A stretch of DNA of 64,000 nucleotides from Octopus sinensis (taxonomy: Eukaryota), in assembly GCF_006345805.1 (NCBI RefSeq), contig NC_043009.1, positions 59,706,001-59,770,000 of the forward strand, in the 5' to 3' direction. Below are positions 23,436 to 64,000 of the stretch, one piece after another; positions within the stretch are counted from its first letter, which is position 1, and every line of letters starts with the position of its first letter. The position numbers and the translations under genes are program-made. The notes beneath the pieces were generated by a model. The model was not told the origin of the DNA. It made no database searches and saw only the letters and a list, made by a program, of their open reading frames with translations.

Positions 23436-23867
23436 GTACGTTGAAATGCTTCCAATTTTTACGGATCTCATATGATATGACATGAAAACTCTGTTTGTTT
23501 GTTCTTGTTCTTGTTGTTGTTTGTCCATCAATATGACTTTGTTAACAACAGCAATTAATTATTTAATAATTAAAACTTAAAATGAAGCGAGGCAAGACCA
23601 AAAACGAGAGAGGGATAATTATTTCGTTTTCCAATCAGTGATTTTTGTCCAGAATGACAATAACTACCACAACCACCACCACCACCACCACCACCAGTGG
23701 TGACATTGGAGGTCTAGTCTTCCATGTTTCACAATATCGTAACCATTAACATGAATTAACAGAGACTACATTTGCATGTTGCCTACATGTTACTCACAAG
23801 ATACCCCACTATTCATTGAAAAGTCAAGTCAAAGTTATTAGTGAAAGAGTATATATCTATCTATGTC

Positions 23868-23941
<74 letters not shown>

Positions 23942-24075
23942 ATACAGGGTAAAGTATTATTAATTTAATAATTAATAATTTTACCAAGTAGTTGGGTATG
24001 GAAAAAAACCCATTATCAGTGAAAAAAACCCATTATCAATAAAAACTTATACAAAAAGTTTTTTTATAATTAAAA

Positions 24076-24259
24076 ACATAATTAAGCGATCAGCAAAAGT
24101 TGCTTCACCACATAACGAAATTTAGAAATAGCAGTCAAACTACTACAAATTCTTCTAATACATTATATCTCCAGATATATTGTAGGTGAAGAATTAGTAG
24201 TTTGACTGCTATTTCTAAATTTCGCTATGAGGTGAAGCAACTTTTGCTGATTCCTTAAT

Positions 24260-24264
<5 letters not shown>
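24076..24264. mobile_element. Foldback/MITE-like element
   Basis: ~75-bp inverted arms: cagcaaaagttgcttcacc...gcagtcaaactact / agtagtttgactgc...ggtgaagcaacttttgctg. Confidence 0.8.
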
Positions 24265-24305
<41 letters not shown>

Positions 24306-24819
24306 CTGAGTAGTAGAGGTGAAAATCTGGTAAGTTAAGTTTTCACTCCCAAGTCTAACAGCCATTTATAATTATTTCTCTTCGCTTAAATTGATCACAC
24401 TCTAGAAAAATGTCCTTTAGAGCTTCATCTGCTCTCCTACAATTAACAAAAATTGTGTATTCTGGGTAAAGAAGCCAATATGAACTAACAACCACTCTTT
24501 CTCTTCTCTCTTTCATTTTCCCTTTACCTTTCTTCCTGATACACATATCTACATACATACATACATACATAGATATGTGTGTGTGTATATATATATATAT
24601 ATATACATATAGGGAGAATTCAGGAAAAAACAAAAGACAAAGACAGGTGGTGTACAAAACAAAACAGATGTATTAGTATAACACTCAGGAATTGAAAAAG
24701 TCTTTTACGTTTCGAGCCTACGCTCTTCTACAGAAAGGAACACAAAAAAAAAACAAGGAGAGAAAAAAATGTGTGTAGTGGCTAACGATCTATACACACA
24801 CACACACACACACAACATA

Positions 24820-25038
24820 CAAGGGGGCAGCTGAAAAGTTCCTGGCTTTGGGTAAAAGAAAATACAAGAGGATCAGTTAATTATGATTTTATTCAATATG
24901 TTCCCCTCTCAGGTTCACACTTATTACAGCAGTATTTCAGTTTTTCTTAGTCCTGTAAAAAGAACACAGAAGGTTGAGCCTCCAAGCAGCCCTTTCATGA
25001 TACCCTTAAAAACTAGGGACTTTTCGGTGAACCCTCAT
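24820..25038. mobile_element. Degenerate mariner-type MITE
   Basis: ta-caagggggcagctgaaaagttcc ... ggacttttcggtgaaccctca, an imperfect mariner-like TIR pair. Confidence 0.5.
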
Positions 25039-25899
25039 GTGTGTGTGTGTGGTATGTGATAAAGAAATTCATTTCGTTATTCAAGGTTTGATGTGTCTGT
25101 GTGACTCTCTGGGTAAGTGTCATCACTTACAGCTTAGTGTCAACCTATGCCTGGCTACCACGCTAGAAGCAGTGTGACATGAAAATTGACAAAACCAGGA
25201 ACTTCCAAGGCCTCAGGTTTTATTTCAGAGATTTCTTTCTCTTTGGTAGATTACCAACCAAGGTTAAAGAGCTTCTACCTTCCGATGAGGTGAGCTATCC
25301 CATTCCAGACACCAAACTGACCCAAACACTCTATAAAGTGATCAGATACCACTCCAGTATTCAATGCTGAGTAGCTCATTCATACATAAAAAAATACACT
25401 AAGGAGCTTGCTTACGAACCATATGGATCTGGGTTCAGTCCCACTGCATAGCACCTGCGGCAAGTGTCTTCTACTATAGCCTCGGGCCAACCAAAGCCTT
25501 GTGAGTGGATTTGGTAAGACGGAAACTGAAAGAAACCTGTTATGTATATATATGTGTGTGTACTTCTGTCTGTGTTTGTCCCCCCACAACTGAAGTTGGT
25601 ATCTTTACACCCCCATAATGTAGCAGTTCAGTAATAAGAGACCGATAGAATAAGTACTAGGCTTACAAAGAATAAGTCCTGGGGTCAGTTTATTTTGACT
25701 AAAGGTGGTGCTCCAGCATAGCTGCAGTCAAATGACTGAAACAAGTAAAAGAATACACACACACACACACACACACACACATACTAGTTGGTTACTAACC
25801 AGTGGTGGTTGTGTCTTATCTGTCCTGTATTAACTAACACCTCTCTTTCTCTCTCCCTCTCTCTCTCTCTCCATATATATATATATATTATATATATAT

Positions 25900-27750
25900 C
25901 TTCCTATCTCTCTCTCTACAATATTTAACCGCAGGCTGCCTCAAGCCGTAATCCCATCTTTTTCCCATCTTTCAGTCATTGGCGGTCTTCTTTTTCCTCC
26001 TCTCTTCTTCTTCATATGCTAAAACTTGAAAACCGCCATTACTATTACTATTACGATTCTGCAATTTAAATTCCCAGTTCAACTACTTTCTTCTTCAATT
26101 TCAACTCCCGCTCGATGACCGCAGCAAGTTCTTAAAAAATTTATCTTACTATATTTTTTATTCGTTGTTAATACGTTTATTCATACACTGTTACGAAAAT
26201 TTAACCTTTTTTAAGATACTTTCAAGCCTTCGCCATAACTTGATTTATCTTCCTATCTCTCTCTCTACAATATTTAACCGCAGGCTGCCTCAAGCCGTAA
26301 TCCCATCTTTTTCCCATCTTTCAGTCATTGGCGGTCTTCTTTTTCCTCCTCTTCTTCTTCATATGCTAAAACTTGAAAACCGCCATTACTATTACTATTA
26401 CGATTCTGCAATTTAATTCCCAGTTCAACTACTTTCTTCTTCAATTTCAACTCCCCTCGATGACCGCAGCAAGTTCTTAAAAAATTTATCTTACTATATT
26501 TTTTTTTCGTTGTTAATACGTTTATTCATACACTGTTACGAAAATTTAACCTTTTTTAAGATACTTTCAAGCCTTCGCCATAACTTGATTTATCTTCCTA
26601 TCTCTCTCTCTACAATATTTAACCGCAGGCTGCCTCAAGCCGTAATCCCATCTTTTTCCCATCTTTCAGTCATTGGCGGTCTTCTTTTTCCTCCTCTTCT
26701 TCTTCATATGCTAAAACTTGAAAACCGCCATTACTATTACTATTACGATTCTGCAATTTAAATTCCCAGTTCAACTACTTTCTCTTTCTTCTTCAATTTC
26801 CTTCCAATCCCTCGATGACCGCAGCAAGTTCTTAAAAAATTTATCTTACTATATTTTTTATTCGTTGTTATACGTTTATTCATACACTGTTACGAAAATT
26901 TAACCTTTTTTAAGATACTTTCAAGCCTTCGCCATAACTTGATTTATCTTCCTATCTCTCTCTCTACAATATAACCATTTAACCGCAGGCTGCCAAGCCG
27001 TATCCCAATCTTTTTCCCATCTTTCATTGGCGGTCTTCTTTGCCTCTTGCGTCTTCTTTTTTTCCCTTCTCCTCCTCTTCTTCATATGCTAAAACTTGAA
27101 AACCGCCATTACTATTACTATTACGATTCTGCAATTTAAATTCCCAGTTCAACTACTTTCTTCTTCAATTTCAACTCCCGCTCGATGACCGCAGCAAGTT
27201 CTTAAAAAATTATCTTACTATATTTTTTATTCGTTGTTAATACGTTTATTCATACACTGTTACGAAATTAACCTTTTTTAAGATACTTTCAAGCCTTCGC
27301 CATAACTTGATTTATCTTCCTATCTCTCTCTCTACAATATTTAACCGCAGGCTGCCTCAAGCCGTAATCCCATCTTTTTCCATCTTTCAGTCATTGGCGG
27401 TCTTCTTTTTCCTTCCTCCTCTTCTTCATATGCTAAAACTTGAAAACCGCCATTACTATTACTATTACGATTCTGCAATTTAAATTCCCAGTTCAACTAC
27501 TTTCTTCTTCAATTTCAACTCCCGCTCGATGACCGCAGCAAGTTCTTAAAAAATTTATCTTACTATATTTTTTATTCGTTGTTAATACGTTTATTCATAC
27601 ACTGTTACGAAAATTTAACCTTTTTTAAGATACTTTCAAGCCTTCGCCATAACTTGATTTATCTTCCTATCTCTCTCTCTACAATATTTAACCGCAGGCT
27701 GCCTCAAGCCGTAATCCCATCTTTTTCCCATCTTTCAGTCATTGGCGGTG
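25900..27750. repeat. Tandem array, ~345-368-bp unit, ~5.3 copies
   Basis: Unit starts at about 25900, 26249, 26594, 26948, 27316 and 27663; copies differ mostly by homopolymer indels. Confidence 0.92.
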
Positions 27751-28800
27751 CGCCCGCCCCCCACCCCCACCACGAATACCGTTGAACACTGTTCTCACCC
27801 CCACCACCAATACCGTTGAACACTGTTCTCACCCCCCCCCCACCACCAATACCAGTATACCCCGTTCTCTCTATCTACACCGGATACACCTTACTCATCT
27901 ACACTGGGTACGCCCTACTCCCTCCTCCTCCTCCCACTACCACTTCTCCTCATATGCTTAAGACAAGCTGCTAGCGCCATAGCTCATCAACTGCCCACCG
28001 ATCTTACGCTTCCTCCTGACACTGCCTCAATCCGACCATCCCCTTTTAGTACCCTCCCGCCTCGTCACCTACCATTCTAAGTACCCCCCTACCCATTCTA
28101 AGTACCCCCCTACCCATTCTAAGTACCCCGGATCCCCAAAGTACCCCGGATCCCCAAAATACCCCAATCCCCAAAGTACCCCGGACCTCGTGCCCCCGTG
28201 CCGCTGACACGTTAAAATGCTCGAATCCGATCGTGACGATGCCGGACCCTCCGGCCCCTGTGCAGGTGGCACGTAAAAAGCACCCAATCCACTCACGGAG
28301 TGGTTGGCGTTAGGAAGGGCATCCAGCCGTAGAAACTCTGCCAGATTCAGACTGGAGCCTGGAGCGGCCCCTGGCTTCCCAGACCCGGTCAAACCGTCCA
28401 ACCCGTGCTAGCGCGGAAAGCGGACGTTAAACGATGATGATGATGATGATGATGATGATATATATATACACACTATACTATACATAACATATAACCATAG
28501 CTTGCTGTTGTGAATTAACAAAGTAATCATCATTAACATTAACAATATCAATTAATAATAACAACGATAATATTAATTAATCCATGCTAACGTTGCTATG
28601 TCTGTTTCATGTCCACTTACTCATCTGCCATTCATTTACAGCAAAAGTCTCCGGAATCTTCCCTCTCTGTCTCTTACATATTGGTAAGAGCAAGCGGAAC
28701 AAAGATGTTATTTATTAAGTATAAGCTATGACACTAACAACCCTAATCATTGTCGTTAATCTTTTTTGTATTTATTATTATCATCATTACAGTTGTTACC

Positions 28801-28832
<32 letters not shown>

Positions 28833-28859
28833 TACTACTACTACTACTTCTATTTATTA

Positions 28860-28903
<44 letters not shown>

Positions 28904-29001
28904 GAGCGAGAGGGCAGTGCATGCCATCAAAGTCTGGTCTAGTAACCCATCCCACTCAAAAGGTTCCTGAATAAGGGTTTTTTAAGGATGTTGTTTAAGG
29001 A

Positions 29002-29048
<47 letters not shown>

Positions 29049-29330: not shown

Positions 29331-29376
<46 letters not shown>

Positions 29377-30200: not shown

Positions 30201-30205
30201 AAATT

Positions 30206-30271
<66 letters not shown>

Positions 30272-30286
30272 GTACTGATGTTGTTA

Positions 30287-33096: not shown

Positions 33097-33844
33097 GTGT
33101 ATTTCAATAGAAAAATAACAAAATGGTCGAGACATGTAACACATAATTATTGGTTTAATATATGTAAGCCTCCCTTGGCTGTTGCCAGCCTCCTCTGGCC
33201 CCTGTGCCGGTGGCACGTAAAATGCACTCACTACACTCATGGAGTGGTTGGCATTAGGAAAGGCATCAAGCTGTAGAAACACTGCCAGATCAGACTGGAG
33301 CCTGGTGCAGCCTCCTGGCTTCCTAGACCCCTATCGAACCGTCCAACCCGTGCTAGCATGGAAAACGGACGTTAAACAATGATGATGATGATGAAGATTC
33401 AGAGCTCATTTAAGACTTGAAAGATTTAAGAGTTACTTTATGTTTTGGTAATAGAAAGAAAAAGAAATTACGAATTAATGGCTGCCAATAGTTGAACGGT
33501 CCATTGAGAATTTCAGAGTGTGATGCAAGGCAAAACATCAAAGAAATGCAAGTGAAATTCCTGTAGATGGCGCTTCAAAAAAGTAGCCATATTTTTGTAA
33601 ACATAAACTAATAAAATAAAATAGCAAGGTTTATAAATTTGGAAATATATTCCCGCCATGGAGGTTTGACTTTAGTAGCGTGCAGGGTGCATCCACTAAA
33701 CTTAGTACCTGTAGCAGGAGTAAGATAATAATGATAATAATAATAATAATAATAATAATAATAGTAATAATGATAATAATAATAACAACAACAACAATAC
33801 CTATTTGGTATTGAAATCAATGTTGTAAATTATATGTACTTATA

Positions 33845-34812: not shown

Positions 34813-35207
34813 GTATACATATATATATATGTGCGTATATGCAAATTTATACATACGTGTATATATATTCACATATAAGTATACATATACATATCTATAT
34901 ATGTTTCTATATATATATATATACATATGTACGTACATACATACATACATACATACACACATGCATGTACACACATATACTTACAGACATATATATATAT
35001 ATATGTAATATCTGATGGTTTAAATATAACTAAACGAAAGAAAATTCCAACCCTGTTTTATTTTAAAAGGCAAAAATGTTTCCCCACTGAAATAGCAGGG
35101 GTTGTGGATCTCTTAAAAGCTGATGTTGTCTCCTTAGTTCTGTGAGTATCATCTATGTGGATGTAGCATATATATATATATAAATACACAGATATTAAAA
35201 TGCTTTG

Positions 35208-36238: not shown

Positions 36239-37414
36239 CTATACATACACATCTATTCATTATATATATATATATATTTAATTAAATATATAACTATACA
36301 TACACATATATTTATTATGAAATCGAAATCAAATTCAATGACTGGCATCCATGCTAGTGGAGCACCAAGAGCACTATCCGAGCGTGATTGTTGCCAGAGC
36401 AGCTAACTGGCCTCCATGCCAGTGGCACGTAAAAAGCATTATTCGAGCATGATCGTTATCTGCGTCGCCTTACTGGCACGTGAAAAAACATTCAAGTGAG
36501 GTTGTTGCCAGTGCCACTGGACTGGCTCCTGTGCAGGTGGCACATAAAAAGCACCATTTGAGCATGGTCGTTGCCAGTACCACCTGACTGGCCCTCATGT
36601 CGGGGGCACGTAAAGGCACCCACTACACTCTTGGAGTGGTTGGTGTTAGGAAGAGCATCCAGCTGTAGAAACCCTGCCAGATCAAGATTGGAGCCTGGTG
36701 CACCTATCAGCCCTCAGTCAAATCGTCCAACCCATGCTAGCATGGAAAGTGGATGTTAAATGGTGATGATGATATATGTATACATATATAAAGATATAAC
36801 TATACATACATGTATGTATATGTATAGTTATATCTTTAAATAAATGTGTGTGTGTTTGTGTATATATATATATATATATTGCAACCAAAAAGACAAAACA
36901 GACACAAGCACTTACACATCCAGAAAAATTATGCTTTTACTCTCTCACATACACTTGCACCCAAGAACATGGAAACAGACACTTCTACTCCATATAAAGA
37001 ACATAACAACATAACATGTAAACAGACATGCACACATCTCTGCGTCTCTCCATGTCCACATGCTCCACATCACAGCTTCCCCCATGCATCAAATTACACA
37101 CTTGAGCTTTATCCCATACACGCAGATACACACAAGTCCAATTTGTATTTACACCACCTTCCCTATGTTACACGCTGGTTAGCCACATTTCATGTTGTAT
37201 CCACCATGTACACTTGACACAGTTTTTTTTTTTTTTTTGGCAATGAACACCATATCCCTGTTGTACTGAAGTACTGCATGCACAAACAATGGCACACGTG
37301 CATGGACATATACACACACCGCAAATACAAATATATGTATAAACCATTCTTCTTGGAGATGTAAAAATTCAACTTTGTGCAGAGATATACATGGATATTT
37401 ATATTTATCTATAT

Positions 37415-38191: not shown

Positions 38192-38930
38192 CAGGGTGCT
38201 GCAACTATACTCTCATCTAAATTATACAAAAATGAAAATAACACTGACATCTCATTTTAACAGATATATTTACCAAAATTACATAAAAATGTCTTGAAAT
38301 ACTAAAGAGTAAATTTATTCAATAAAATTGCCATTGGCTTCAACCACGACCTCCAGACAACTTCAGAATTTCCTGCAACACTTCTGAATGATCTCCTTGT
38401 TTAAGTTGACGAATGCTTCCATAATCCTTGCCTTCAATTCATCTTTGGTGTTACAAGGAGTTTTGTTGGTCTCTCGCTCAACTGCGCCCCACACATAATA
38501 ATCAAGGGGATTACAGTCTAGTTAAGTGGCCAGATGTTAAGAGCAATGTGGTTACAGAAATTGTCCGACAGCCATGACTGGGTTGTCTTACTTGTGTGCC
38601 ATAGTGCAGAGTCCTGTTGCCAGACATAGGGTCTTCCAGCAGCCACCCTCTTCACCCAGGGCATCTACTATCTCCTCTAGACACTTGATGTAGGCCTCCA
38701 TGTTGAGTCTGAGGCTGTGTGGGAAGATGGATGGCATAACATTGCCATCACTAGTGATCACTCCAAATGCTGGATGTTTGATTTTTATCACTCTCAGTAC
38801 ATGTTTTGGGGACATGGCAAGCCAACAGCTGTTCAGTGTGTTCCGCCAGGATCACCATCTGATCCTAGCAGAAATTTTTCTCATCTGAGAAAAACCAAAG
38901 CATGTTCGGTTGGAGGGGATGCTTGAGTTT
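38192..38930 (-). mobile_element. Tc1/mariner maT-type (DD37D-like) transposase remnant with right TIR
   Basis: Minus frames give LWFFSDEKN, FGVITSDG, WQQDSA.., DCNPLDYYVWGAVERETNK; cagggtg TIR after TA; frameshifts and stops. Confidence 0.85.
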
Positions 38931-41361
38931 GATGATGATGATATGAAGATGATACACACATATATATACTCGCATATGTACACTCGTCTAAGAATCTGTA
39001 AGTCAGAAAAAATATGCTGTTGCATATTTGTCAATAGACTGGATATGTCTAGGCGCGTGCATTTGCATATGAGATGTTACACTTAAGACATGCACACACA
39101 CACACACATATTCACTGCTGAATTTTAGCTATTTTGAACATTTTCAATGACATGTACCTGCAGCCAAGCACATGCTTGAAGGAGAATTTTTTCCAAATGA
39201 TATTTATTGTGCTTATACTGCTGGTTGTCCATAAGAGATGATAATATCATGGGGCTAGCATATCAAAATTGTATACACTTTAGATATGATAAACGGCTAT
39301 TTTAATTTGACATAACTGATGAATTTCAGTCTTTTTTTGCCTTTCCACTGACCTGCTCACAGCCAACCACATGCTTGGGCAAGAATTCATTTTCTCTGAT
39401 GTAGGAAAGAATGAATAAAACATTTGCTGATATTGGGAACAGCCATGCAGCTGAATAAAAATTCAGTGTATGCAATTTATGCAATATTAAATTAAAATAG
39501 CTGTCTATGAATCATACTTAATACATACATATATATATACCTTGTTGATGTGCTGATTACTGCAATATTTTTCCTAAGAAAACATCTCTTATGGACATGG
39601 TCTGTTAAGAACACAAACCAAAATGCAACATATCGTCTTGCTGGCAGCTGCTTCTGGGACAAAGTTTCATCTTCCCTGGTATTTATTGTGTTTTTATCAC
39701 AGAGCCCACAAGAAATGTTATTCCAGGATGAATACTGTAGTAACTGGCCCATTAACAGTCTATATACATGAAGTATAAATCATAGATGTATATACACAAT
39801 ACATATATATATATATATTATATAATATGTGTATATATATATATATATATATCATATAATATATGTATATATATATATTATATATTATATGAATATATAT
39901 ATATATATGTATATATATATATTATATAATATATGTATGTATATATATATATATATATAGTATGTTCTTTATACAGTATGATAAAATAAGAAGGGGAGAC
40001 AAAACAGAATTATCTCATTATATAATTCTTTACATATATCTCAGTAATAGATTTTAGATGGTTACACATTTTGTACCAAGATGTAAAGTTATCCCAATTT
40101 CACAATTTCAGTAAAAAAAGATATTAAAATAAAAAAAAAGTGATTGAATTAATTTTTCTTTAATTATTTTCTTTCCCTGAAAAACACACTGTCTAACGAC
40201 CATCTTTAAAGTATTACTGAAACTTTTAAAACTTATATTTAAATAACGATGTGACTGAATAAACGTTTTCGTTTTCCTTTGTTATTTAATCACTGTATTC
40301 TTACACTACGACCACATCATCCTAAACACCTGCATCCTATGAATGTATATGCATAAGCACGGATACATTGTTGTGAGTAAATGTGTTGGAATGCGGTATA
40401 ACATATTGCGCTCTTAACAAATAGTCGTGTGTCTTGTGCCATGTTAAGGCATATCATTAACAAATTTTATACTGATATATATATTATATATATATATATA
40501 TTATATATATATATATATTATACTATATATTATATTATATATATAGTTGTCTGTATATACTTAACTCTCTTTTATTTATGTGTTAGCTATTGTTAATGTA
40601 TTTTTTGTATTTTGTTTTACCATCACTCTGTGTTAGATAATATATAATTCCTTGTCTTGGTATGAATATAATTTTGATGATGATGATCACGATGATGCTG
40701 CAGATGATTTATTATTATTATTAATACTTCTATTATTATTATTATTATTATTATTATTTTTTATTATCATTATTATTATTTTTTTTATTATTATTATTAT
40801 TATTATTGCTGTTGTCGTTATTATATTAGTGTTATTGTTATGACAATCGTACTGTTGATAATGGTGATGATGATAATACTTAGAAAAATATTTTGCTTAT
40901 ATGCATTTTTTTTTTTGTCTTTCCCCCCATTTGCATGTAAGGTCATGTTCCTTTATCGGTAATTCTGTTCCAACATAGCAAAGGATAACGGAAGAGTCGG
41001 TGGAGCGACTTCAATGGACAAAATAAGCAACAGAATTATAGTTACGAGTCTTTATCTACTTAACTTCATTATCCTGCTATGGCCAGTTTTATCATTCATT
41101 TTTTCAGGCTCTCCAAAACCATGTACCAGTAATATACCAGGATTAATTTAATCAACTATGCCCCGCTTCCCTTTTTTTTATTCTGTTATACACATGTCAC
41201 ACCCTCTACCTCCATTTTCTGATTCATCATTGCAATGTTTTCTATTCCATGCCCTTGTGGCAACAATTAACATAATTATTTTTATTTGTTAATATTATTT
41301 GTTTGATTAATAATATTATCAAATTTTATTATCATTATTATTATTATTTTTATTATTATTA

Positions 41362-42795: not shown

Positions 42796-43848
42796 TCACA
42801 TATACGTATACATATATTTATATAGCAGCTATGACCTTCTTGCTTCAGTTAGTTAGGTTACTAGACTATCATAAATTCACCTTTTAAATGTAGGAATTTA
42901 TGTATGTATGTGAGTCTGTTTATATCGTTGCACACAAAAGTGAATATGTATGTTTTCAAATAAAGTGTGTTTGTGTGTGTAGAGTTCGGTTTTTTTCATA
43001 CCCGAATATGTCAATACGTTTTTTATTGATATCTTGATTCAGGTCCATTATGAAATATATTTGTCAAAAGTTGTTTTCTATAGAAAAAATTTTTTTTTAA
43101 TAAAGCAGTATGGGGCCCTTATAAATGAAGGTTGTTTTTTTTGTTAATTGTGTTTTTTGGTCACCTTTACAAGGTTGTTTTAGAAAGAATGTTGTAAAAT
43201 ATACATCTATCTATCCATCTTTCAAATAATCTCTTTCTCTCTTTATCTATCTATCTATCTACCTATCTATGAGTGAGTGTGTGTGTGTGTGTGTTTATGT
43301 GTCTGTATGTGTGTAAGTAAAAAATACACGTACACATACAAACATATATGTCTCAATTGGGTGAAGATTGTTTTGGTGTTTACTTATTTTTCACTTGTTT
43401 GTTTGTTGTTTTTGCATGTATATCATGTATGTGTTGATGCATGTAGGTGTTTTAATTATTAGATGATTCCATTTTTAATTGGTTGTAGGTTTTCTTCTCA
43501 TATTGTATTTTGGGTTATTTTTATTTATTCATCTTCATCATCATCATTGTTATTATTATTATTATTATCATTATTATTATTATTATTATTATCATTATTA
43601 TTATTATTATTATTATTACCATTATTGGCATTGAGCTGGCAGAAGCGTTAGCATGCCAGACGAAATGCTTAATGGCATTTTACCTGTATTTACGTTCTGA
43701 GTTCGAATGCCACTGAGCTCAACTTTGCCTTACATCCCTTGAGGGTCGATGAAATAAGTACCAGTTGAGCACTGGGGTCAAAGTAATTGACTAGGCCTTT
43801 CCACAAAAATTTCAGACCTTGTGCCTATAGCAGAAAGGATCATTATTA

Positions 43849-43892
<44 letters not shown>

Positions 43893-43931
43893 GTTTTATT
43901 ATTATTAAGGCAATTAGCTGGTAGAATCGTT

Positions 43932-44810
43932 ATAATAATAATAATAATAATAATAATAATTGTGTACAGTGCTCAGGTGCACTACAACTCATCTAAAGTG
44001 TATATATAATCAGGTGTAGTTTCGGCGGATTTCGGAAAGCATGAGGGCCTTAAAAGATGCAGTGTCATGGCAGTCAACAACTGACGCAGGCAGTTTATTC
44101 CATGCTTCAGCAACTCTGAGCGTGAAAAAATGTTTCCGAAAGTCATGGGAGCTGTATTGTTTTCTGACTTTGTAGGCATGTCCACGTGTGTTAGACACAT
44201 GGAGATCAAAAAGGTGTTCAGTGTTGTTGTTGGTGAGGTGGTTGATAACTTTGTGGGTGTTTACCAAGTCCGTCGCCAAACGCCGGAGCTTCAGTGAATC
44301 CATGCCCAGGGAAACAAGGCGCTCAGAATATGGTAGGTGTCTGATGGAGGGTATGCGTTTGGTTGCACGTCTCTGGACAGATTCCAGGAGGTCAATGTTC
44401 TGTGCAAGATAGGGGTTCCAAACTGATGATGCGAATTCCAAGTGTGGTCGTACCATAGCTGTATACAGTTTTAAATAGATGGCTGGAGAGCGGCTAACAA
44501 AAGACCTGCTGAGTGATGCCAAGACACCCTCGGCCTTCCTGACAATTTTAGAGATATGCTTTGACCAACGCAAATCACTGCTGACAGTGATGCCTAGGTC
44601 ACGCTCGCAAGAGGATTTCTTGATATCAGTGTTGTGGAGGGAGTAAGTGAACGCAGGGTTTTTCTCCCAAAATGCATGGTGGTACACTTGTCCACAGCCA
44701 GTTTCAGTTGCCAGTCTGTGATCCATTGCTGCATTGTGTCTAGGTCTGATTGCAGGAAAGAGTTGTAGACATCAGGATCTGTCCTCTTGATTTCAAGGTA
44801 CAGCTTGTCT
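43932..44810 (-). mobile_element. 5'-truncated CR1-type LINE, RT C-terminal half, inserted in a family A SINE
   Basis: DKLYLEI...DLDTMQQWITDWQLKL..DKC (frameshift) ERDLGITVSSDLRWSKHI...VRPHLEFASSVWNPY...LESVQRRATK...FFTLRVAEAWNKLP; (ATT)n tail. Confidence 0.92.
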
Positions 44811-47800
44811 CAAAGGAAGTGCTTAATGGCATTTCTTCCTACCCTTTGTATTCTCAGTTCAAATTCCACCAAAGTTCACTTCCTCTTTCATCCTTTGATG
44901 AAAAAATAAAATGAAGTACCAGTCAATTACTGGTATCGGTTCACTAGCCCCCACCCTGCTAAAGGTGTTATCATTGTGTCAAAAGTTGAAGCAATTATTA
45001 CCATTGTTTTGCATAAACAAGTTGCCAGACTGGTAGAATCATTACAGCACCAAACAAAATGCTTAGCAATACTTTGTTCAAGTCCTTCTGGCGTTGACCC
45101 TGCTTTTCATCCTAGCGGTGAGAGATGGGGGGGGGGAGGTCGATGAAATAAGTACCAGTTGTTCACTGGGGTTGATCTGACTGACTCATCCCTTCCCCTG
45201 AAATTTCTGGCCTTGTGCCATAATTTTGCATAAACAGAATTATGGTCTAACCTCAATCAATTTCACCAACTTAATTGTAATAAAAAATACTTGCTCAGAC
45301 AGCATACAAGGGATCAAATCCTAACTCTTGATTTCCATTACACCTCTAATATCAACACTGCCGCTATAACCAAGACAACTCTAAATTACCTCAGTCCATC
45401 TAGCTGTAAATAGACGCCATACACTGACACAGCAGCAACACTGTATAATAATTTAACCTTCTTCAGTAGTCTAGAACTCTCAAACCACCTTAGAAAGGCC
45501 ATTGCTGGTATAGTCAATTAGGTGCCAGACTACCAATTACCAAAATCTGGGCCAGTCTTCATAATCTTTTTCAGAGCTTCTGAGGGTCATGGAATGAAGG
45601 AAGTAATCCTCAGACTATACTAAAGAAAAATAAGGACCAGATGATAGCATGTTCAGATCCACAGGGCAGTGTGTGTGGCACAACCAGTAGACCCATAGTG
45701 TGTGGCACAGTCAGCTGTCTCATAGGAAAATGCACTGTATAACCATGGTTCCTCAGGATAATGTACATTGAAATCATTAGATCAACAGGGATGTCTGTGG
45801 AATAATTAGTAGAGTCATAGTACAATGTATGGCACATGATCCATAGAATATCAGAGGCTTTGAGGAATTTCATTACTTACATTTACAGCCTTCTATTTCA
45901 AATAAATCAGAACTGGCTCTACCCTTTCACCATTCCAGAGTCAATAAAATGAGCAACAACTGACTGGTTTATTGAGTCCCTTTTTGAGGTTTTGAGGTTG
46001 TCCCTATGAAATACTGGACTCTTTGTTATCTCCCAAATTTCTCCCCGAAAGTTTTTTGTTTGTATTTTAGAAATCATTATTGTCAATTGGGGCAAAGAAC
46101 TGGTCAGATTGGTAAATGATCAGGCATAATGCCTAGTGGTATTGAACTGCCTCCTTTTATTGTTCTCTGTTCAAATCCCATAAAGGTTAACTTTGCATTT
46201 CATCATTCCAAGGTTGATAAACTAAAGTACCCATAATGTACTAGAGTTATAATCTGTAATAAGCAGGGCTGATTTGAACTCAGAACCTATGTTCTCCCAA
46301 AATGTGTAGCACCATCACTATCTTAGATATATTTATTATTATTGTTTTAATTGTATTTCCTTTTTTTATTTTCATTTTGTGTTTCTGTTTTGTATTAGTC
46401 ATGGTTAAAATAGATTTGAAATTGATCCCTACAGAATTAGATTATAATTAATAATTATTTATTATTTACAACAAACCTATCATTTTTCAAATTCTGGTTT
46501 CTGACTCTTTGGAAAACTTGCTACGGCAATAAGTCATCAGGTTGGCAGAGCTTCTGGGTTATGATTGAGAATATTCTTAGATGATGTATTGAGTATTTGA
46601 TGGCCTTTCAAAATCCCACTGTATTATATAGAGACAAGGAGTATTCTTGACAAAATATGCTATAATAGTTAGTTTTTCTATATTTTTCCTACATTCTGAA
46701 CTCAAATTCTGCTGCTGTTAACTTTGATTTTCAATTCACTCAGGATTCTGTAAAATAAATACCAGCTGTTTATTGGGAGTCAGTTGAATTTATTGTACAT
46801 CTCACTAGATATCTACTATAAAAGGTTTTGTTAAACACTACTTTACAATAGAGGACAGTGGACAAACAGGAGTGTTGAATGCACAGATGTACTGGACACA
46901 CAGAAACATATGTAGCTATACACACTAGATACATAAATGTATTCAATATACAGATGTACTATACATACAGACATAATGGACATACAAACATGCTAGACAC
47001 GCAGGTATGCTCAAATCTCAGATATACAGGACACAATTGTTCTAGCTTACAGATGAACTAGGTACACAGTCGTACTAGTTGCAGTTGAACAAGATATGCA
47101 TTTGCTAGGCATACCAATGTACTAAACACAGAATAATGTACTGGAGAAAATCTGACCCAGCTAAATTCTACTTCTAACACAGTTTCAATGTTTCATCCAC
47201 TGCTCCACTAAACCTATCATGCGAAGGTACTGAGTTCAGTCCTACCCAAAGATTAACCGACCATGTATAAAGATATATAGACATCATATCAATAGAGCAG
47301 TGTTGCCTTAAAGATGAAGCCATCCATGTTACTGTAACACAACAATTTGTTTTGTACATCATATACTCAACCTCTTTGATCCATAGTCTGGCATTCCACC
47401 AGTTATGAAGATGAGGGTTCCTGTTGATCCAATCAATGGAACAGCTTGCTCGTGAAATTAATGTTCAAGTGGCTGAGCACTCCACAGACATGAGTATCTT
47501 TAACATAGTTCTCAAGGAGCTTCAGCATGACACGGAAAATGAAAAGGCTGGCCCTTTGAAATATAAGCCATGCGCCACTTCATAATGAAGGTACAACATA
47601 GTCAGTCCCAGTTGAAACCAGAAGTACAGAATGTCTTGGATGTAAGGTAACCAAATGTTTTGTGCACTTAGCATCAGGCTGGTTACCTCTATTTGCACTA
47701 TTTGTCAGCAACAATAATAATGACGACAACAATATCAGTGGCCTGAATAAAGCACCAAGCTGGCAGAATAGTTTGCACTCTGGACAAAATGCTTGGTGGC

Positions 47801-48416
47801 ACTTCGTCTTCTTTACGATCTGAGTTCAAATTCCACTGAGGGAGACTTTTTCTTTCATCCTTTCAGGGTCGATATTAAAAGTATCAGTCGAGTACTGGGG
47901 GGTCAATGTAATCAACTTTGCTCCCCTTCCAAAATTGCTGGCCTTGTGCCAAAATTTGAAACCAATATTATTGGCCTGAGTTAGTTGTTACTGCTTCATA
48001 ATTGGTTTGCCCATTTTAAGTTACTACAGCAACATGAGTTCCAATAATAATAGTCATAATAATAATAATAATAGTAATAATAATAATAATGCCATTAACA
48101 ACAACAACAACAAAAATTAGCCACCTTAATTAGTTTATTTTATAATTCATTTATGGATGTTTTTTTTTCTTCCACCCCCTTCAAAATTTTTCTAAAAATC
48201 ATTTTCCATTTCTTATTTTTATTTTCATTTTCATTTTTTTCTTTGTTTGGTCTTCCTATGTTTACTGTCTTGCATTCTCTTGGATCTTCCCTGTCTGTGT
48301 GTTAAAAGTTAATTAATCATTGGGTTATAAATTTGAGACTATTTTATAATTAGTAAAAATGATTTTTGTGTCTCAGAACCTTGGTAACTATGTAATAAAA
48401 CCCAAGTGACAGTCAG

Positions 48417-48443
48417 TACCAATACTAGAACTCTTAAACATGG
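48417..48443 (+). CDS. Candidate 27-nt microexon: (V)PILELLNM
   Basis: Consensus ATGG|gtaagt donor; cagtcag| acceptor with weak pyrimidine tract; phase 1-1; peptide resembles the vertebrate FAT1/FAT3 insert. Confidence 0.4.
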
Positions 48444-48875
48444 GTAAGTCATTCAACAATAACCCTGCACACTTTCCGGCAATTCCTACTTTCAGTTTTT
48501 TTTTTATATTTTTGGTTTTTTTTGGCATTTTTGTATTATTATTATTATTATTATTAGTGTTATTATTACTATTATGATTGTTGTTGTTGTTGTTGCTATA
48601 TTTTTATGTTAGTTTTCTTTAAATTAAAAAAGAAAATTTTTTTTTCCTCTTTAGTTCAATCACTGCTGTTTTAGTTTTTAACTTTGTGTATGTGTGTATG
48701 TACATATACATATATATTTTATATATATATACGTTTGTATGTATATACACACATAAACAGGTGTGTGTATTTACAATGATGGAACCTGCTGTTTTGCAAC
48801 ATTAAAGAGCACCTATTCAGTTTCCCCCCGCTTGATTCTAGCTGTTTATTATCAACGCATTTTGCTATATATAGG

Positions 48876-48915
<40 letters not shown>

Positions 48916-48997
48916 CACACATACATATATATATACATACATATATATATAATAAATCTCTGAACGAGGTATAAACAGTAGCTGCACGACAATGTGA

Positions 48998-53345: not shown

Positions 53346-53366
53346 TGAATCGGGATAAAAGAAAAG
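53346..53366 (+). CDS. Candidate 21-nt microexon of the FAT-like tail: (V)NRDKRK
   Basis: Long U tract + cctttcacag| acceptor, AAG|gtagtt donor, phase 1-1, open frame. Confidence 0.55.
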
Positions 53367-56756: not shown

Positions 56757-56819
56757 ATGGACATCATACATTTCGGAATACCTTTGGTAAAATTCTCAAG
56801 GACAACAAAATTCGTGAAG
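56757..56819 (+). CDS. Candidate 63-nt (or 30-nt) microexon: (D)GHHTFRNTF(G)KILKDNKIRE
   Basis: Pyrimidine-rich upstream, ctag| acceptor, two in-phase donors (TTTG|gtaaaa at 56786, GAAG|gtatcc at 56819), open frame. Confidence 0.5.
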
Positions 56820-57429
56820 GTATCCTTATCATTATTATTATTATTATTAATACCTTTTTTTCCACTGCAAAGGACTGATTTTTTTTTTTTTTTCTTCAAC
56901 TAAAATAGTTTATAATAAATTTTTGTCCCCCTCTTTTTTTTTTTTTTTTTTCCTATGTTGCTAATTAATTTCTACTGATCCCATTTTGCATGGTATTATT
57001 TAGAATGAAATTAATTATAACGACTCAGAAATAACATTAATGCCTGTTTGATGGTTTTTTTTTTTGTCTTGTAAAACATTAAACAAACAGGCAAATTAAA
57101 ATAATTAATCATTAATAAACTATGATGGAATGCAGCTTTGCTTGAAAATGAATTAAAAAAAAAAGAAAAGAAAGAAAACTATTTTAACTATGACAAAATC
57201 AGATACGTTTAATCTGTTAGGAAGGTTAATATCTGTTTTTATCTGTTGTTGTTTAGTCTGTTTAATCTGTCTTAGGGTTTAATTTATCTGTTATAAGCAT
57301 TAATCTATTATAAGGTTTTTATCTTAGTTCTTTGTGGTTTCTAGAAAACATTGGGATCTCTTTTTCAGTTTTTATTTATTTTTGATTTTCTGTTAAAAGC
57401 ATTTGTAATTTTGTTCTAATTAAAAACGA

Positions 57430-58368: not shown

Positions 58369-58452
58369 TTATTACCTTTGAAGGTTTTTATTTCCATGCT
58401 GGCCACTTGATAAGATCGATATTCAATTTAAATTAACGATCTTATCGTTATC

Positions 58453-58483
<31 letters not shown>

Positions 58484-58924
58484 TTATATACGAACACACA
58501 TATATGTACGCCTCTTCTTTCAAACTTTAACCTCTCAACACTAACATACAAAGGTACTATAGTCTCACTAGTGCTGGTGTCATGAGAAAAGAACTCAATA
58601 CACACAATTTTGTGGTATGCATTAAAAAGGAAATCCAGTTACAGAAATCGTGCCAAAGCAGATAAAAGTGCCCAGTGTTCTCCTCTGACTCACTGGATCC
58701 TGTTAACCCATCCAACTTGTGCTAGTCTGGGAAACAATGTTAAATGATGTGGAGATTTTATTTTATTCCTCCTGATTTTTCATTCTAGTGGCATAACGAG
58801 ATCTATTCAGCCTTCGTTATAACACATGCGTATCATTGAACTTGGCCTGTTTTTGTTTGTTGTTTGTGCAAGTTGTCTCAGACCATGATAATCAATCCAG
58901 ATCCAAACGGCATATTTGCTTTTT

Positions 58925-60090
58925 AATTAAGCCCTTCACTCATTATGGAGCGTAAGCCATCAATGACTTCTCTCCATCGTCCTTCGTTCTGAGTTGCCCT
59001 TCTTCTCCCAGATCTTGTTGCATTGGAATTGCTTTCAGTGCTTCTGTAACTTTACTGTTTTACTCGGAAAAGGGTGTTTAGCTCTACACAATCTTATTCT
59101 TACCTCTTTGAAAAGGCCTCGGAAAGGGTGTTTAACTCTACACAATCTGATTCTTACCTCTTTGAAAAGGCCTCAGAAAGGGTGTTTAGCTCTACACAAT
59201 CTGATTCTTACCTCTTTGAAAAGGCCTCAGAAAGGGTGTTTAGTTCTACACAATCTGATTCTTACCTCTTTGAAAAGGCCTCAGAAAGGGTGTTTAGCTC
59301 TACACAATCTGATTCTTACCTCTTTGAAAAGGCCTCAGAAAGGGTGTTTAGTTCTACACAATCTGATTCTTACCTCTTTGAAAAGGCCTCAGAAAGGGTG
59401 TTTAGCTCTACACAATCTGATTCTTACCTCTTTGAAAAGGCCTCAGAAAGGGTGTTTAGTTCTACACAATCTGATTCTTACCTCTTTGAAAAGGCCTCAG
59501 AAAGGGTGTTTAGCTCTACACAATCTGATTCTTACCTCATTGAAAAGGCCTCAGAAAGGGTGTTTAGTTCTACACAATCTGATTCTTACCTCTTTGAAAA
59601 GGCCTTAGAAAGGGTGTTTAGTTCTACACAATCTGATTCTTACCTCTTTGAAAAGGCCCCAGAAAGGGTGTTTAGCTCTACACAATCTGATTCTTACCTC
59701 TTTGAAAAGGCCTCAGAAAGGGTGTTTAGTTCTACACAATCTGATTCTTACCTCTTTGAAAAGGCCTCAGAAAGGGTGTTTAGCTCTACACAATCTGATT
59801 CTTACCTCTTTGAAAAGGCCTCAGAAAGGGTGTTTAGCTCTACACAATCTGATTCTTACCTCTTTGAAAAGGCCTCGGAAAGGGTGTTTAGCTCTACACA
59901 ATCTGATTCTTACCTCTTTGAAAAGGCAGTCCATCATAGTCTGGTCGCTATCTTTTGATCTGTCCAACATGGGAGGCCTTACTAGGAGCTTGCACTCTGT
60001 TGAAGTAGGTCTCAGGGTCATTGAGACCCACAATCCACCACAACTAGAGCTGGACATTGTGGTGGGACCCAAAACATGACAGCATGGGAA
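58925..60090 (-). mobile_element. Internally deleted RTE-like LINE containing a VNTR
   Basis: Minus 59060-58925 reads WEKK.ATQNEGRWREVIDGLRSIMSEGLN*, like RTE C-termini. 59928-60090 resembles RTE 5' UTRs (recalled, not aligned). Confidence 0.6.
59067..59927. repeat. 54-bp minisatellite, ~16 copies
   Basis: Unit gaaagggtgtttagctctacacaatctgattcttacctctttgaaaaggcctca, head to tail, no spacers. Confidence 0.97.
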
Positions 60091-62411
60091 AATTGGCATA
60101 AAATAATGATGATATATAAGTATGAAAGTGTGTGTGTCTGTTAATTAGGTGTCATTATAAATTGTGGGTTTGTTTTTTTTTTCTTTTCTCAATTCAGTTT
60201 CCCCAACACTTCATGCGTTTTCTCAAAAACTAACAGACATTAGTCACAGTAGTATGGCTTGTTCTAACAACAGTTAAACGACAACAAAACGAGCAATTCA
60301 ATTTTCATTATTATTATTGTTACTGTTACTACTATTACTACTACAATTGCTTTTATTATCACTTACTACCACTACTATTACTGTTAGTATGAAATAACAT
60401 AGAGATGACTTTTTAATTCGTTAATGAATGCATTAACCAACACATTGCTAAATCAACATTATTGGTAAATTTATTGTTTTTGATGTTGACGATAATGACG
60501 ATGACAAATATTGATGATTGTGATATTGATTTTAATGATGTTCATGTTGTTGTTGTTGAGTGTCAAGTCAGTTCTGATTGAGCAGTAAAAAAAGTAAAGT
60601 TATCTTCCCGTGTCATGCAAACTCATAAGGGCCAGTTTCCCAGTTCCATTGGTACATAAATTCTCCCCCTGGACAAGACACCGGTCTGCCGCAGGATCAC
60701 ACATATTTGCCAGCTGAGTGGACTGCGGCAATGTGAAATGAAGTGTTTTGCTCAAGAATACAATGCGTTGCCTGTTCCAGGAATTGAAACCACAATCTTA
60801 CAATCATGAGTCCAACACTCTAATCACTAAGCTAGTGATTCAGCAAGGGGAGACTACTTCACTTTCTCCCTGCTATGATGGCCTAAATAACCTATTGGTT
60901 AACTACTACAATTAACCAAATAGTCCATTGGCTACTTGGATCTAAGGTGAGAAACCCCAGGTAGTTTGACTTTGGTAACTACCAAATAAAGGGTTTCTGC
61001 ATACGTGTATGTGAGTGAAAGTTAGTATGTGTGTATGTGACTAAACATGAGAATGTGAGTATGTGTTTGAATGTGTGTGCATGTATGGAAGTGTGGAGAT
61101 GCTTGTATGTATGTATACTTCTTTGGACTAGTCAAGCCATATAAACTGGAAAGAATTCATAGGCACAGGTGTGGCTGTGTGGTAAGTAGCTTGCTTATCA
61201 ACCACATGGTTCCGGGTTCAGTCCTACTGTGTGACACCTTGGGCAAGTGTCATCTACTATAGCCTTGAGTGGATTTGGTAGATGGAAACTGAAAAAGACC
61301 TTTGTATATGTGTCTATGTGTGTGTGTTTGTCTGTGATTTCCTCCATCCTCATCGCTTGACAACCTATGCTGGTGTGTTTACATCCCCGTAACCTAGTGG
61401 TCTGGCAAAAGAGCCCGATAGAAAAAGTACTAGGCTTACAAAGAATGAGTGCTGAGACCAATTTGCTTGACTGAAGTCGGTGCTCCAGCATGGCTGCAGT
61501 CAAATGACTGAAACAAGTAAAAAAGAAGAAAAAAAAGAGAATCAAAGAAAGACAGGTGTGGTGATGTGTGTGTGTGTGTGTGTGCAGATATTTGCATGTT
61601 TAAAACAGAGAGTGAAAGCAGACAAATAATTGGACAGACGGACAAACAATCTAACAAACAACTACAGACAGTTTTAAGACACCAGTAAATAAAAGACTAC
61701 CAAATACCAATTATCAAAGAATTTAGTTGATTTTTTTTTTTTTTTGTTTTTTTTTCCTCCTGTATGCAATGAATGACTCCAGTCTAATGCTTTGATCTTT
61801 GACTTTTGACTTTTGCCTTCTAGAATGATCTTGAGTATTTCATATTATCTTGGCTAGTTGGCATGACAGTTCTTGATAATATTCTTTCTTTTATCGTGCA
61901 TTGGACATCTTTGATTCAATTTTTTTTTTCCAAGACATCTCTTTGTTGTTTTTTTTTGTTTTGATTTTTTGTTTATATATTTTTCCTTTCGATTATCTTT
62001 TATATTTATTTAATTATTGTTTTTTTTTATTGTTCTTACATGTTGATGCCAAATCTCTTTACATTCTACATAGAATTTAGAAATTTGGTTTGGTTTGATC
62101 AAGTCTTTAAATGAGTCAAGAACAAAAATATTATATCGTTATTGTTTCCCAAACAACCAAAAACTGTGAATAACTGGGGGGGGGGGATTATTGACCATTT
62201 TTCTTTTAGTGACCTTTTTTTTATATTTCAAAAAAAAAATGTAATAAAAATTAAAAAAAACAAATATTTCTAATAGTAATATATTTTATGAATTTGTAAA
62301 CCTAAGATCAATGTGGTGGGCATCTATCAAGGGAGGTTGACTATTCTTTCTGGTGATCAAGTTTGCATCCTACTTCTGAGTCTGACAGCAAGCTCTCAAA
62401 GATGTTAATGT

Positions 62412-62448
<37 letters not shown>

Positions 62449-62530
62449 TTAGCACCCACTCGCATATATGTGGCTGTTTTAGTACACACACACACATATA
62501 TACATGTATGTCTGTGTGTGCATATATATG

Positions 62531-62734
62531 CAGGGTGTCCCAGAAGTTGCGTACCACTGGGATTTTTTAAAAGAATACACCGTTATTGATTTCAAAAACA
62601 CTATTGAAATTAACCGCAACAAATGCTCGAATTGAGCTCCCTCTACGATAAAACATGCAGAAAAAATATAATAAAATAAAATGCTTTAATTATTTTTAAG
62701 GAAAACCAGAATGGTGCACGACTTCTAGGACACC

Positions 62735-62737
<3 letters not shown>
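62531..62737. mobile_element. Tc1/mariner-type MITE
   Basis: cagggtgtcccagaagttgcgtacca / tggtgcacgacttctaggacaccctg, followed by TA. Confidence 0.8.
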
Positions 62738-62776
<39 letters not shown>

Positions 62777-64000
62777 GAGTGGCTCCTCATTTCCAAGTAT
62801 TTCTTTTTTCTTTTGTATTTCCTCATTTATGTCAGTGCCTCTGGTCACTGTCAAAACCAATTTTTCTTGGAACAATTATCCATAAAAGGTCACATCAGAT
62901 GGCCTTCTGGAGGACTAGAGTCAGCTCATCTTTTTTTCATAGCCATTCGTCTCTTACCTTTCTTTGACAATGTTCTTCAAAATGTTCTTGACCATGGCTC
63001 TGGCTAAAATTCAGTATCTATGATCCATGTTAACATTCTCCATTTAAACTTGACTCTTTGTTCTAGAGTCTGTGGCCTTTGCTAAAGTAACAGGCTTTAA
63101 AACTTTAGCCTTTGTTAAAATTTGATACCACAGAAGAACAAGCTAAACAACAACAAAACCAACTGATTATAGACAAAGGTTACTGTTCTAGTTTTTATAT
63201 CTGCTTTAAAGATGTTGATCTAGCCAAAATATGTTTTCTATATTTCGATTGTTTTGTTCTTCTTTTATTCTATTCTATTTTATTTTGTTTTGGTTTTGAG
63301 CTAAATATTGTCATCAGGATTATAGAATAAAATTTGATTTTTAGTAAGAGACATTCATTTGACTTTAGCTATGTGAATCTCAAAAATGTTTGCTCAAAAA
63401 TGTTACTTTTAGGTACTTTTAGATAGATGTTGTGACTCAAACTAAAATATTTTTTCTATTTTATTTTATTTATGCTTTATTTTTACTAAAGTTAGATCAC
63501 ATTTTGAGAAATTTTATGGTTGAAAAGTGAACTTTTTAGCATTTAAACTGGACATCTAGAGCCCATGTGTTCTGGCAGTTTTATGTTCAAACTGGCCAAA
63601 TCTGACCACATCTAGCCTACAATGTCACTGTAAAAATTAACAATCACATCATTGAAATCTCAAAGCTGCAATAAAATATGATTAATTCAATACAGTGGGA
63701 ATAAATAACTATTATATTTGGCTGAACAATTAGAATGAGACAAAAAACCTAAGAAAACTTCCTGAATAAAAATGGTTGTAGAATTGGGTTTTAAACTCAG
63801 GGGTATTGAGTATGAAGAATATGGTTACATTTTGATGCAGTGTCAGGTACTGCAGTGGGGTGGAGGTACCAGTGGGAGAATTAATGCATCTGTTGCCATC
63901 TGTTGGATTTTCAAAGATGTCAAGGCAAATGAAACAATTTTAGGTGAAGGATTAGCACAAGGAGATATATTGTGGGGGTGTTGATTAGTTTTATAGTTCT

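Follow-up and report, generated by a model that had tools for sequence, protein, structure and literature searches.

Small alternative exons, probably at least four, in the last intron of a FAT1-like cadherin gene from Octopus sinensis, at the junction where vertebrate Fat1 and Fat3 tails vary by splicing

Fat-like cadherins organize cell polarity as well as neuronal and tissue architecture. In the mouse, the choice of cytoplasmic-tail isoform decides kinesin binding and subcellular location (PMC5082931, PMC12721327). For example, exons 24.1 (56 bp) and 24.2 (40 bp) of mouse Fat3 insert 32 residues at the exon 24/25 junction; this developmentally regulated insert splits a D-N-x-Y-H motif in the Kif5-interaction domain and abolishes Kif5B binding (PMC5082931). 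The 36-nt penultimate exon of Fat1 (+12), whose inclusion is regulated, disrupts a phosphotyrosine-binding-type motif and alters localization, and the brain also makes a +32 form and a truncated +8TR form (PMC12721327, PMC10297709); the mouse and rat isoforms FAT1(+12), (+32), and (+8TR) are those of Braun et al. 2007, to the extent that this study is described in PMC10297709 and PMC12721327. The DNA analyzed here is a stretch of 64,000 nt from Octopus sinensis (NC_043009.1, positions 59,706,001 to 59,770,000), referred to as the window, with the 3' portion of a large cadherin gene on its + strand; NCBI names the O. bimaculoides orthologue "protocadherin Fat 1-like". The last intron of this cephalopod FAT1-like gene, ∼48 to 50 kb long, probably contains at least four small alternative exons, denoted c1 to c4, between the exon that ends in ...SEEDLP and the exon that encodes G-YHWDTSDW. 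As proposed in a first-pass annotation of the window, the insertion point is the alternative-exon site of vertebrate FAT1 and FAT3 (PMC5082931, PMC12721327, PMC10297709).

The penultimate constitutive exon, exon A (23295..23435, + strand, 141 nt), is in phase 1 at both ends and encodes (S)ERKNSMNLAKAMPIQDPSPLFHRNLSGRDTSSYGSLPMTGSEEDLP followed by G. Its end, ...GSEEDLP plus G in phase 1 with a gtacgt donor, is as read in the first pass. Exon A is identical in 41 of 41 residues to the O. bimaculoides model XP_052828471.1 and 68% identical to the ORF (open reading frame) of a cuttlefish-like transcript. A FAT-type tail is recognized by its YHWDxSDW segment and by a class-I PDZ ligand (HTEV-like) at the C terminus; in O. 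bimaculoides, the tail reads GYHWDTSDW...HLHTQV, with the corresponding terminal exon of O. sinensis located beyond the window. The O. bimaculoides RefSeq proteins were reached through a profile search with bivalve terminal exons, followed by inspection of cluster mates. The tail models comprise LOC106876693 (XP_014780827-839, isoforms X1 to X7) and, in addition, XP_052828471.1. The sequence of XP_014780830.1 is M-VNQDKRK-DGHHTFRNTFGKILKDNKIRE-GYHWD, and X3 gives the same chain; X5 is M-DGHH...IRE-GYHWD, and X7 is M-GYHWD. In XP_052828471.1, which reads MNLAKAMPIQ...GSEEDLP-DGHH...IRE-GYHWD, exon A is joined straight to c3. Compared with the window, these models are identical in the c3 protein, the c4 exon, and the c1 donor and differ by one residue in c2. 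The four exons, with their splice sites, are conserved and already exist in the automated annotation of the sister species; a full-text literature search found no publication on these O. bimaculoides tail isoforms.

The in-frame cassettes of the set are c2 and c3. Exon c2 (53346..53366, + strand) is a 21-nt, in-frame basic microexon, cacag/TGAATCGGGATAAAAGAAAAG/gtagtt, that encodes VNRDKRK. Its orthologue in XP_014780830.1, VNQDKRK, is likewise 21 nt long with one change (R to Q), and the AG, the GT, and the length are all kept in O. bimaculoides. Exon c3 (56757..56819, + strand, 63 nt, in frame; ctag/ATGGAC...CGTGAAG/gtatccttat) encodes DGHHTFRNTFGKILKDNKIRE and is present in XP_052828471.1, X3, and X5. 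In O. bimaculoides, 62 of its 63 nt are identical, and the single change is synonymous only in the phase-1 frame. Comparison of the octopus and cuttlefish-like sequences points to the same frame: phase 1 is the sole frame open in both, with four synonymous and eight nonsynonymous codon differences. Conversely, the MDIIRF... frame of c3 that RefSeq adopts in X1, X2, and X4 contains a stop in the cuttlefish-like orthologue and shows nonsynonymous change only; it was rejected as a coding frame. A shorter variant of c3 (donor 56786), offered in the first pass as an alternative to the longer form, was also rejected, being used by no model or transcript.

Transcript evidence for c2 and c3 comes from nine Logan RNA-seq contigs (L010 to L017 and L019), reached via P0096 and its cluster mate, each of which contains a long spliced FAT ORF. 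Eight of the nine (L010 to L017) represent one species, with 0 to 6 mismatches per ∼2.5 kb, and differ from one another by exact gaps of 21 nt and 84 nt (21 + 63). The run SRR19578102 is listed as larval RNA-seq from Sepia esculenta (PMC9538352); the species is thus probably this cuttlefish, and the comparison probably spans the octopus-cuttlefish split. Between exon A (here ...SESEEDLP) and an 84-nt exon, L010 carries VRRGKKK plus DEQRILRNSFGKILKDNNVRE, L011 to L016 and L019 carry DEQRILRNSFGKILKDNNVRE only, and L017 carries neither insert. The c2 orthologue, VRRGKKK, is therefore present in L010 and replaced by an exact 21-nt gap in L011 to L016 of the same species, and the c3 orthologue, DEQRILRNSFGKILKDNNVRE, is present in L010 to L016 and L019 and skipped in L017. 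These patterns demonstrate that the orthologues of c2 and c3 are combinatorially included or skipped in the RNA of a distant cephalopod. No c3-like exon was found beyond the octopus and cuttlefish-like lineages by homology search or by a search of the representative library.

A fourth exon, c4 (61824..61834, + strand; positions 38736-38746 of the O. bimaculoides locus L009), was missed in the first pass and was found through O. bimaculoides isoform X6 (M-I-L-S-YHWD...), which it explains. It is 11 nt long, ctag/AATGATCTTGA/gtattt, and reads G/AA TGA in phase 1, that is, Glu followed by a stop, so that the tail is truncated. The exon is identical in both octopuses, inside an 84-nt perfect run (61812-61895). 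The stop of the upstream frame overlaps the ATG of c4 (A-ATG-A / TGA). RefSeq isoforms X1, X2, and X4 (P0131, P0070, and P0132) read ...FVK-NDR-YHWD, which needs a 7-nt exon, AATGATC; the 26-nt c1 of O. bimaculoides, the 63-nt c3, and these 7 nt add up to 96 nt (32 codons), equal to the vertebrate +32 total. In the cuttlefish-like species, a different exon carries the stop: the 84-nt exon (EVETTEL-stop) is present in all nine contigs (L010 8544-8627; L011 to L017; L019), with its stop 60 nt before the last junction. In the related genome L018, this exon and the terminal exon are not contiguous, which marks it as a separate cassette; it does not occur in the 9.8 kb of L018 that precede the terminal exon, and blastn-short and peptide-pattern scans detected no orthologue in either the window or the intron of O. 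bimaculoides. The T-E-L at the end of its protein, ...EVETTEL, fits the class-I PDZ-ligand pattern (compare the normal ...HTQV end).

The remaining exon, c1 (48417..48443, + strand, 27 nt; cag/TACCAATACTAGAACTCTTAAACATGG/gtaagt), encodes VPILELLNM in phase 1. Its length is 26 nt in O. bimaculoides (TTAACATGG) versus 27 nt here (TTAAACATGG), and the frame is not conserved. The donor and body of c1 are used in O. bimaculoides X2 (MLELLTW...), only the donor being validated, and the initiator M of X3, X5, and X7 fits the terminal ATG/G of c1. In O. sinensis, c1 may add a cassette of nine residues; alternatively, it may shift the frame or serve as a 5' exon with an ATG that opens a tail-only protein. 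ATGs in frame with the terminal exon are located at the c1 end (48438-48443) and in c4, and RefSeq starts predicted tail-only proteins at these positions. The first-pass annotation had listed c1, c2, and c3 as three candidates; all lie on the + strand where it placed them and chain in frame to G-YHWD as described, and their limits had to be moved rightward by one base relative to the peptide coordinates, since the first codon of each peptide had been completed with the G of the acceptor AG, which belongs to the intron. Its suggestion of a combinatorial microexon system stands for c2 and c3, the orthologues of which are included or skipped in RNA, and is doubtful for c1, with its unconserved frame.

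The portion of the last intron inside the window (23436..64000, + strand), its first 40,565 nt, was compared with O. bimaculoides chromosome CM046613.1 (locus L009, reached through XP_052828471.1). The two are colinear in a blastn chain, with 20,787 nt aligned at 88.1% identity, and in this alignment with another octopus, c2 and c3, and also c4, are conserved as exons. The last position of the window, 64000, corresponds to L009 position 40476, and the L009 terminal exon (48286-48992, starting tttcag/GCTATCATTGGGAC) lies 7.8 kb further; the entire last intron of O. bimaculoides is 38,161 nt. This synteny places the terminal YHWD...HTQV exon of O. sinensis ∼8 to 10 kb beyond the end of the window and gives an intron of ∼48 to 50 kb. 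In agreement with the first-pass statement that no YHWD exon exists in the remaining 40 kb, tblastn searches of the window with oyster terminal exons and with a spliced, transcript-like tail (P0022, ...SEDDMN-AYHWDISDWAP...) produced no match to a terminal exon. The sole "YHWD" in the window (62552-62563) was dismissed as a chance occurrence: it lies in an arm of a MITE-like (miniature inverted-repeat transposable element) inverted repeat, in a 548-nt segment absent from O. bimaculoides (62532..63079, strand not assigned), the left part of which is MITE-like, with inverted-repeat arms flanked by TA repeats.

To what extent these exons stand out from the intron was assessed with a crude splice-site score computed over all open phase-1/phase-1 AG..GT segments of 9 to 99 nt in the intron (n = 1,576). 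Among these, c2 ranked at the top (99.9th percentile), with c3 and c1 at the 96th and 94th percentiles, respectively. By window sequence alone, the candidates are indistinguishable from chance; it is orthologous transcripts and models that identify them as real. Conservation was measured in 101-nt windows against O. bimaculoides, for which the intron mean is 88% identity: c3 and c4 reach 99% (99.3rd percentile, among the top four windows), c1 97% (95th percentile), and c2 96% (91st percentile). The first pass had described the candidates as lying in unique, U-rich DNA. The exons are indeed single-copy, with repeats confined to flanking (TTA)n microsatellites, and tracts rich in U or CU precede c2 and c3 but not c1. 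Other conservation peaks (35006-35097, 41248-41323, 48826-48912, and others) were considered as exons and rejected, having no convincing AG/ORF/GT structure. Runs of 71 to 92 nt that are 100% identical to O. bimaculoides and not exon-like (35006-35097, 41248-41323, 48826-48912, and 43019-43089) are conserved noncoding elements. An Rfam search of the window returned no structured RNA match.

The signals around the exons were also inspected. Introns of the U12 class are marked by an RTATCCTT donor, a TCCTTRAY branch site 10 to 20 nt before the 3' splice site, and the lack of a pyrimidine tract. The c3 donor (56820-56829; L009 34618-34627) is GTATCCTTAT, also given as GTATCCTT, and matches RTATCCTT; nowhere else in the window does the + strand match this consensus, and O. 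bimaculoides conserves the site. A U12-type intron 3' of c3 was nevertheless rejected, as the O. bimaculoides sequence has no TCCTTRAY from c3 to the terminal exon, and the acceptors of the latter are pyrimidine rich. Located 162 to 234 nt downstream of c3, a 73-nt intronic block (56981..57053, + strand) is 100% conserved and includes TGCATG (56987-56992), 168 nt after c3. TGCATG is an RBFOX-type motif, and by its sequence the block is a candidate splicing enhancer; with an intron background of 0.42 TGCATG per kb, the motif by itself is not significant. Neural microexons regulated by SRRM4 or RBFOX are at most 27 to 30 nt long, with neural-enriched inclusion and UGC near the 3' splice site and/or UGCAUG downstream. 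The lengths of c4 (11 nt), c2 (21 nt), and c1 (27 nt) fall within this range, whereas c3, at 63 nt, is too long. A TGC occupies positions −10 to −8 relative to c4.

Several points weigh against interpreting the last intron as a set of alternative tail exons. Exon use in O. sinensis itself is deduced from intact, conserved exons and splice sites, the RNA coming from other species. Isoforms X1 to X7 are automated models of a fragmented gene, and some of their combinations may be artifacts; for example, no canonical donor was found for the 7-nt exon AATGATC, which is preceded by AG solely in c4, where the canonical donor defines an exon of 11 nt. The conservation percentiles of c1 (95th) and c2 (91st) are modest, in a comparison of just two close species at 88% identity, and the c3 donor is weak for a U2 intron. 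The length difference of c1, 26 versus 27 nt, makes its role as a coding cassette doubtful. Furthermore, the octopus motif D-L-P-G-Y-H is one residue longer than the vertebrate D-N-x-Y-H, and the occurrence of a stop exon in every assembled cuttlefish-like contig could reflect unproductive splicing, as opposed to the production of a truncated protein with a function.

At its most skeptical, the evidence could be read as chance: open AG..GT segments in a long AT-rich intron, with exon A always joined directly to the terminal exon. The number of open phase-1 segments (1,576) and the splice scores of c1 and c3, which are not strongly distinct, speak for this reading. However, it is contradicted for c2 and c3 by their presence in the sister-species RefSeq models and by orthologues in distant-cephalopod RNA with coding-frame conservation, and we regard it as very improbable. 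Even less credible, to the point of being negligible, is the explanation that the gene ends at exon A or that the assembly is broken at 25.9 to 28.2 kb, so that the downstream DNA is unrelated to FAT, a concern that the first pass had raised. A strong C-over-G skew at 26 to 28 kb and the splitting of the O. bimaculoides locus into two models by NCBI would fit such a break, but the odd composition is explained by a C-rich tandem repeat (25897..27749, strand not assigned; 345-bp period, 5.3 copies), and the window contains no N. Together with the colinear flanks, these features exclude an assembly gap at this position. Order and orientation match O. bimaculoides from exon A to the window end, and a RefSeq model as well as spliced transcripts connect exon A to the downstream exons, which contradicts a gene end.

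Two further alternatives accept the exons and differ on what they do. It is possible, although we consider it the less likely case, that c1 is not an in-frame 9-residue cassette but a frame-shifting exon or an alternative 5' exon behind an internal promoter, with its ATG/G opening a tail-only protein that consists of M, optional c2 and c3, and the YHWD exon. Because the 26/27-nt indel lies upstream of the ATG, only a start at this ATG keeps the frame in both species, and X3, X5, and X7 start exactly there; the c1 acceptor has a weak pyrimidine tract (43% pyrimidines), and c1 is missing from all nine full-length cuttlefish-like contigs. On the other side, a cag acceptor is present and conserved, the 1-nt difference falls in a run of A, where one or the other assembly could be wrong, and the models start with ATG simply because the gene model is 5'-truncated. 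Rather improbable is the proposal that the small exons are real but mainly reduce the output of full-length FAT through unproductive splicing, nonsense-mediated decay, or noise and create no functionally distinct tails. The stop after one codon in c4 and the cuttlefish-like 84-nt stop exon, its stop 60 nt before the last junction in every contig, are compatible with this proposal, as are the several RefSeq combinations that are out of frame with the upstream gene. Against it, c2 and c3 are in frame and protein-conserved, with synonymous changes, across a deep cephalopod split; bivalves have a basic insert at the same site; and vertebrate inserts at this site affect binding and localization. 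On balance, a set of alternative exons that diversifies the FAT1-like tail is the interpretation that we favor.

The upstream part of the window agrees with the identity of the gene. The open segments on the + strand (6684-7742, 8179-8349, 9036-9203, 10643-11059, 12274-12453, 14640-14828, 16402-16647, 18345-18873, and 23295-23435) align in order to residues 1911-2897 of a 2,925-residue spliced ORF in an RNA contig from another cephalopod, and the upstream exons in the window have Pfam matches to Cadherin (E = 7e-19) and Laminin_G_2 (E = 1e-16). The upstream O. bimaculoides orthologue model, 4,314 residues long, has cadherin and LamG matches. In that species, NCBI splits the FAT1-like locus into two genes (L009 1-7016 and 10001-48992 of CM046613.1): the 4,314-residue cadherin body model stops within the exon orthologous to 18345-18873 of the window, and the 297-residue tail is a separate gene. 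The blastn chain is broken at L009 7018-7132, which suggests an indel or an assembly problem in that exon. Several of the RefSeq models translate the tail exons in a frame that is not conserved, and several exon combinations do not keep the frame of the upstream gene. For annotation, the consequence is two RefSeq models for a single octopus FAT1-like gene, with tail isoforms that are partly misframed.

Repetitive DNA occurs elsewhere in the window. The 15.9 copies (97% identical) of a 54-bp minisatellite at 59069-59927 leave two frames open, which yields spurious ORFs of 204 and 294 codons. A 1.6-kb segment at 43814-45451 is absent from O. bimaculoides and contains an ORF of 238 codons (44010-44726, − strand) with no Pfam match; judged by eye, it resembles the C-terminal part of ORF2 of a retrotransposon without long terminal repeats. 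A dispersed repeat of ∼200 to 300 bp that translates as WLALG[RK]ASS[CR]RN[TS]ARSDW recurs many times, in the window at ∼16008-16266, 21741-21916 (− strand), 22490-22770, 28253-28482, 33176-33398, and 36319-36798 and also in L009, for example, at 3558-3765, 39967-40162, and 47263-47455. It is probably a SINE-like (short interspersed nuclear element) element.

The way in which the exons might act is suggested by analogy with mouse Fat1 and Fat3. Included separately or together, c2 and c3 would add 7, 21, or 28 mostly basic residues (net charge of ∼+5) to an acidic stretch. These inserts would split the acidic D-x-x-Y-H motif that spans the exon junction, and such a split could toggle the tail between partner-binding and non-binding forms, changing the cellular location of the cadherin. 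The stop one codon past the junction in c4 would produce a tail without the last ∼235 residues, including the PDZ-ligand end, and stop exons of this kind might act like FAT1(+8TR). If the c1 ATG is indeed used as an internal start, it would yield a free cytoplasmic-tail protein.

Possible counterparts of c2 were found in bivalves, contrary to the first-pass idea of a system special to this lineage. In the representative-library search, an isoform of Argopecten irradians (XP_069130301.1, Fat 1-like isoform X4) reads ...SESEDEP-AARRKKNK-DYHWD, with a basic microexon at the same junction. In oysters (loci L002 and L003, the L003 cluster including Magallana gigas), the last intron spans 1.4 to 1.6 kb and is ∼50% identical overall, and a 350-nt block of 82 to 88% identity (L002 1865-2230; L003 10997-11390) surrounds a candidate basic microexon, ag/CTGCTAGGTGCAGAAAGAAAGGAAAAG/gtagct, which is 27 nt long, 100% conserved, and encodes AARCRKKGK in phase 1. 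The oyster RNA contigs found contain the skipped form only (P0169). The oyster block also appears to contain a shared TGCATG, ∼165 nt downstream of the candidate exon as estimated from the alignment by eye. The scallop and oyster inserts resemble octopus c2 in being short and basic and in their junction, phase, and gtag donor; they are plausible homologues of c2, but 7 to 9 residues are too few to demonstrate it, and no c3-like exon was seen. A scenario that is more speculative than the exon set itself, and that we consider less likely than not, is that the D-x-x-Y-H junction is an ancient regulated splice switch, that the c2-like exon is homologous across mollusks, possibly also with the vertebrate +12 exon, and that coleoids expanded the set to at least four exons within an intron of 40 to 50 kb, including stop exons for tail-less FAT and a possible ATG start in c1. 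That both cephalopods and bivalves have independently used microexons at this junction suggests that the family has conserved the switch as part of its design, or else that the two groups converged strikingly.

The octopus exons are the molluscan counterpart of the vertebrate FAT1(+12/+32/+8TR) and Fat3 24.1/24.2 exons. They constitute a short, defined set that is testable in an animal with a large nervous system, and their discovery illustrates how knowledge of exon phase and of the gene family allowed a reading of sequence alone to find real exons of 21 to 63 nt in a 40-kb intron. The likeness between octopus and vertebrates consists in the position of the junction and in the repertoire, in-frame inserts plus truncating exons. 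As in the FAT1 tail isoforms, small last-intron exons lie directly before Y-H-W-D and provide both in-frame inserts and a stop variant, whereas the inserts measure 12 and 32 residues in FAT1 versus 7, 21, and 28 in the octopus (9 more if c1 counts), where the intron extends over ∼50 kb. The octopus exons likewise occupy the same exon junction as Fat3 exons 24.1 and 24.2. However, the Fat3 exons are an obligate pair, neither of them a multiple of three in length, whereas octopus c2 and c3 are each in frame and are used independently.

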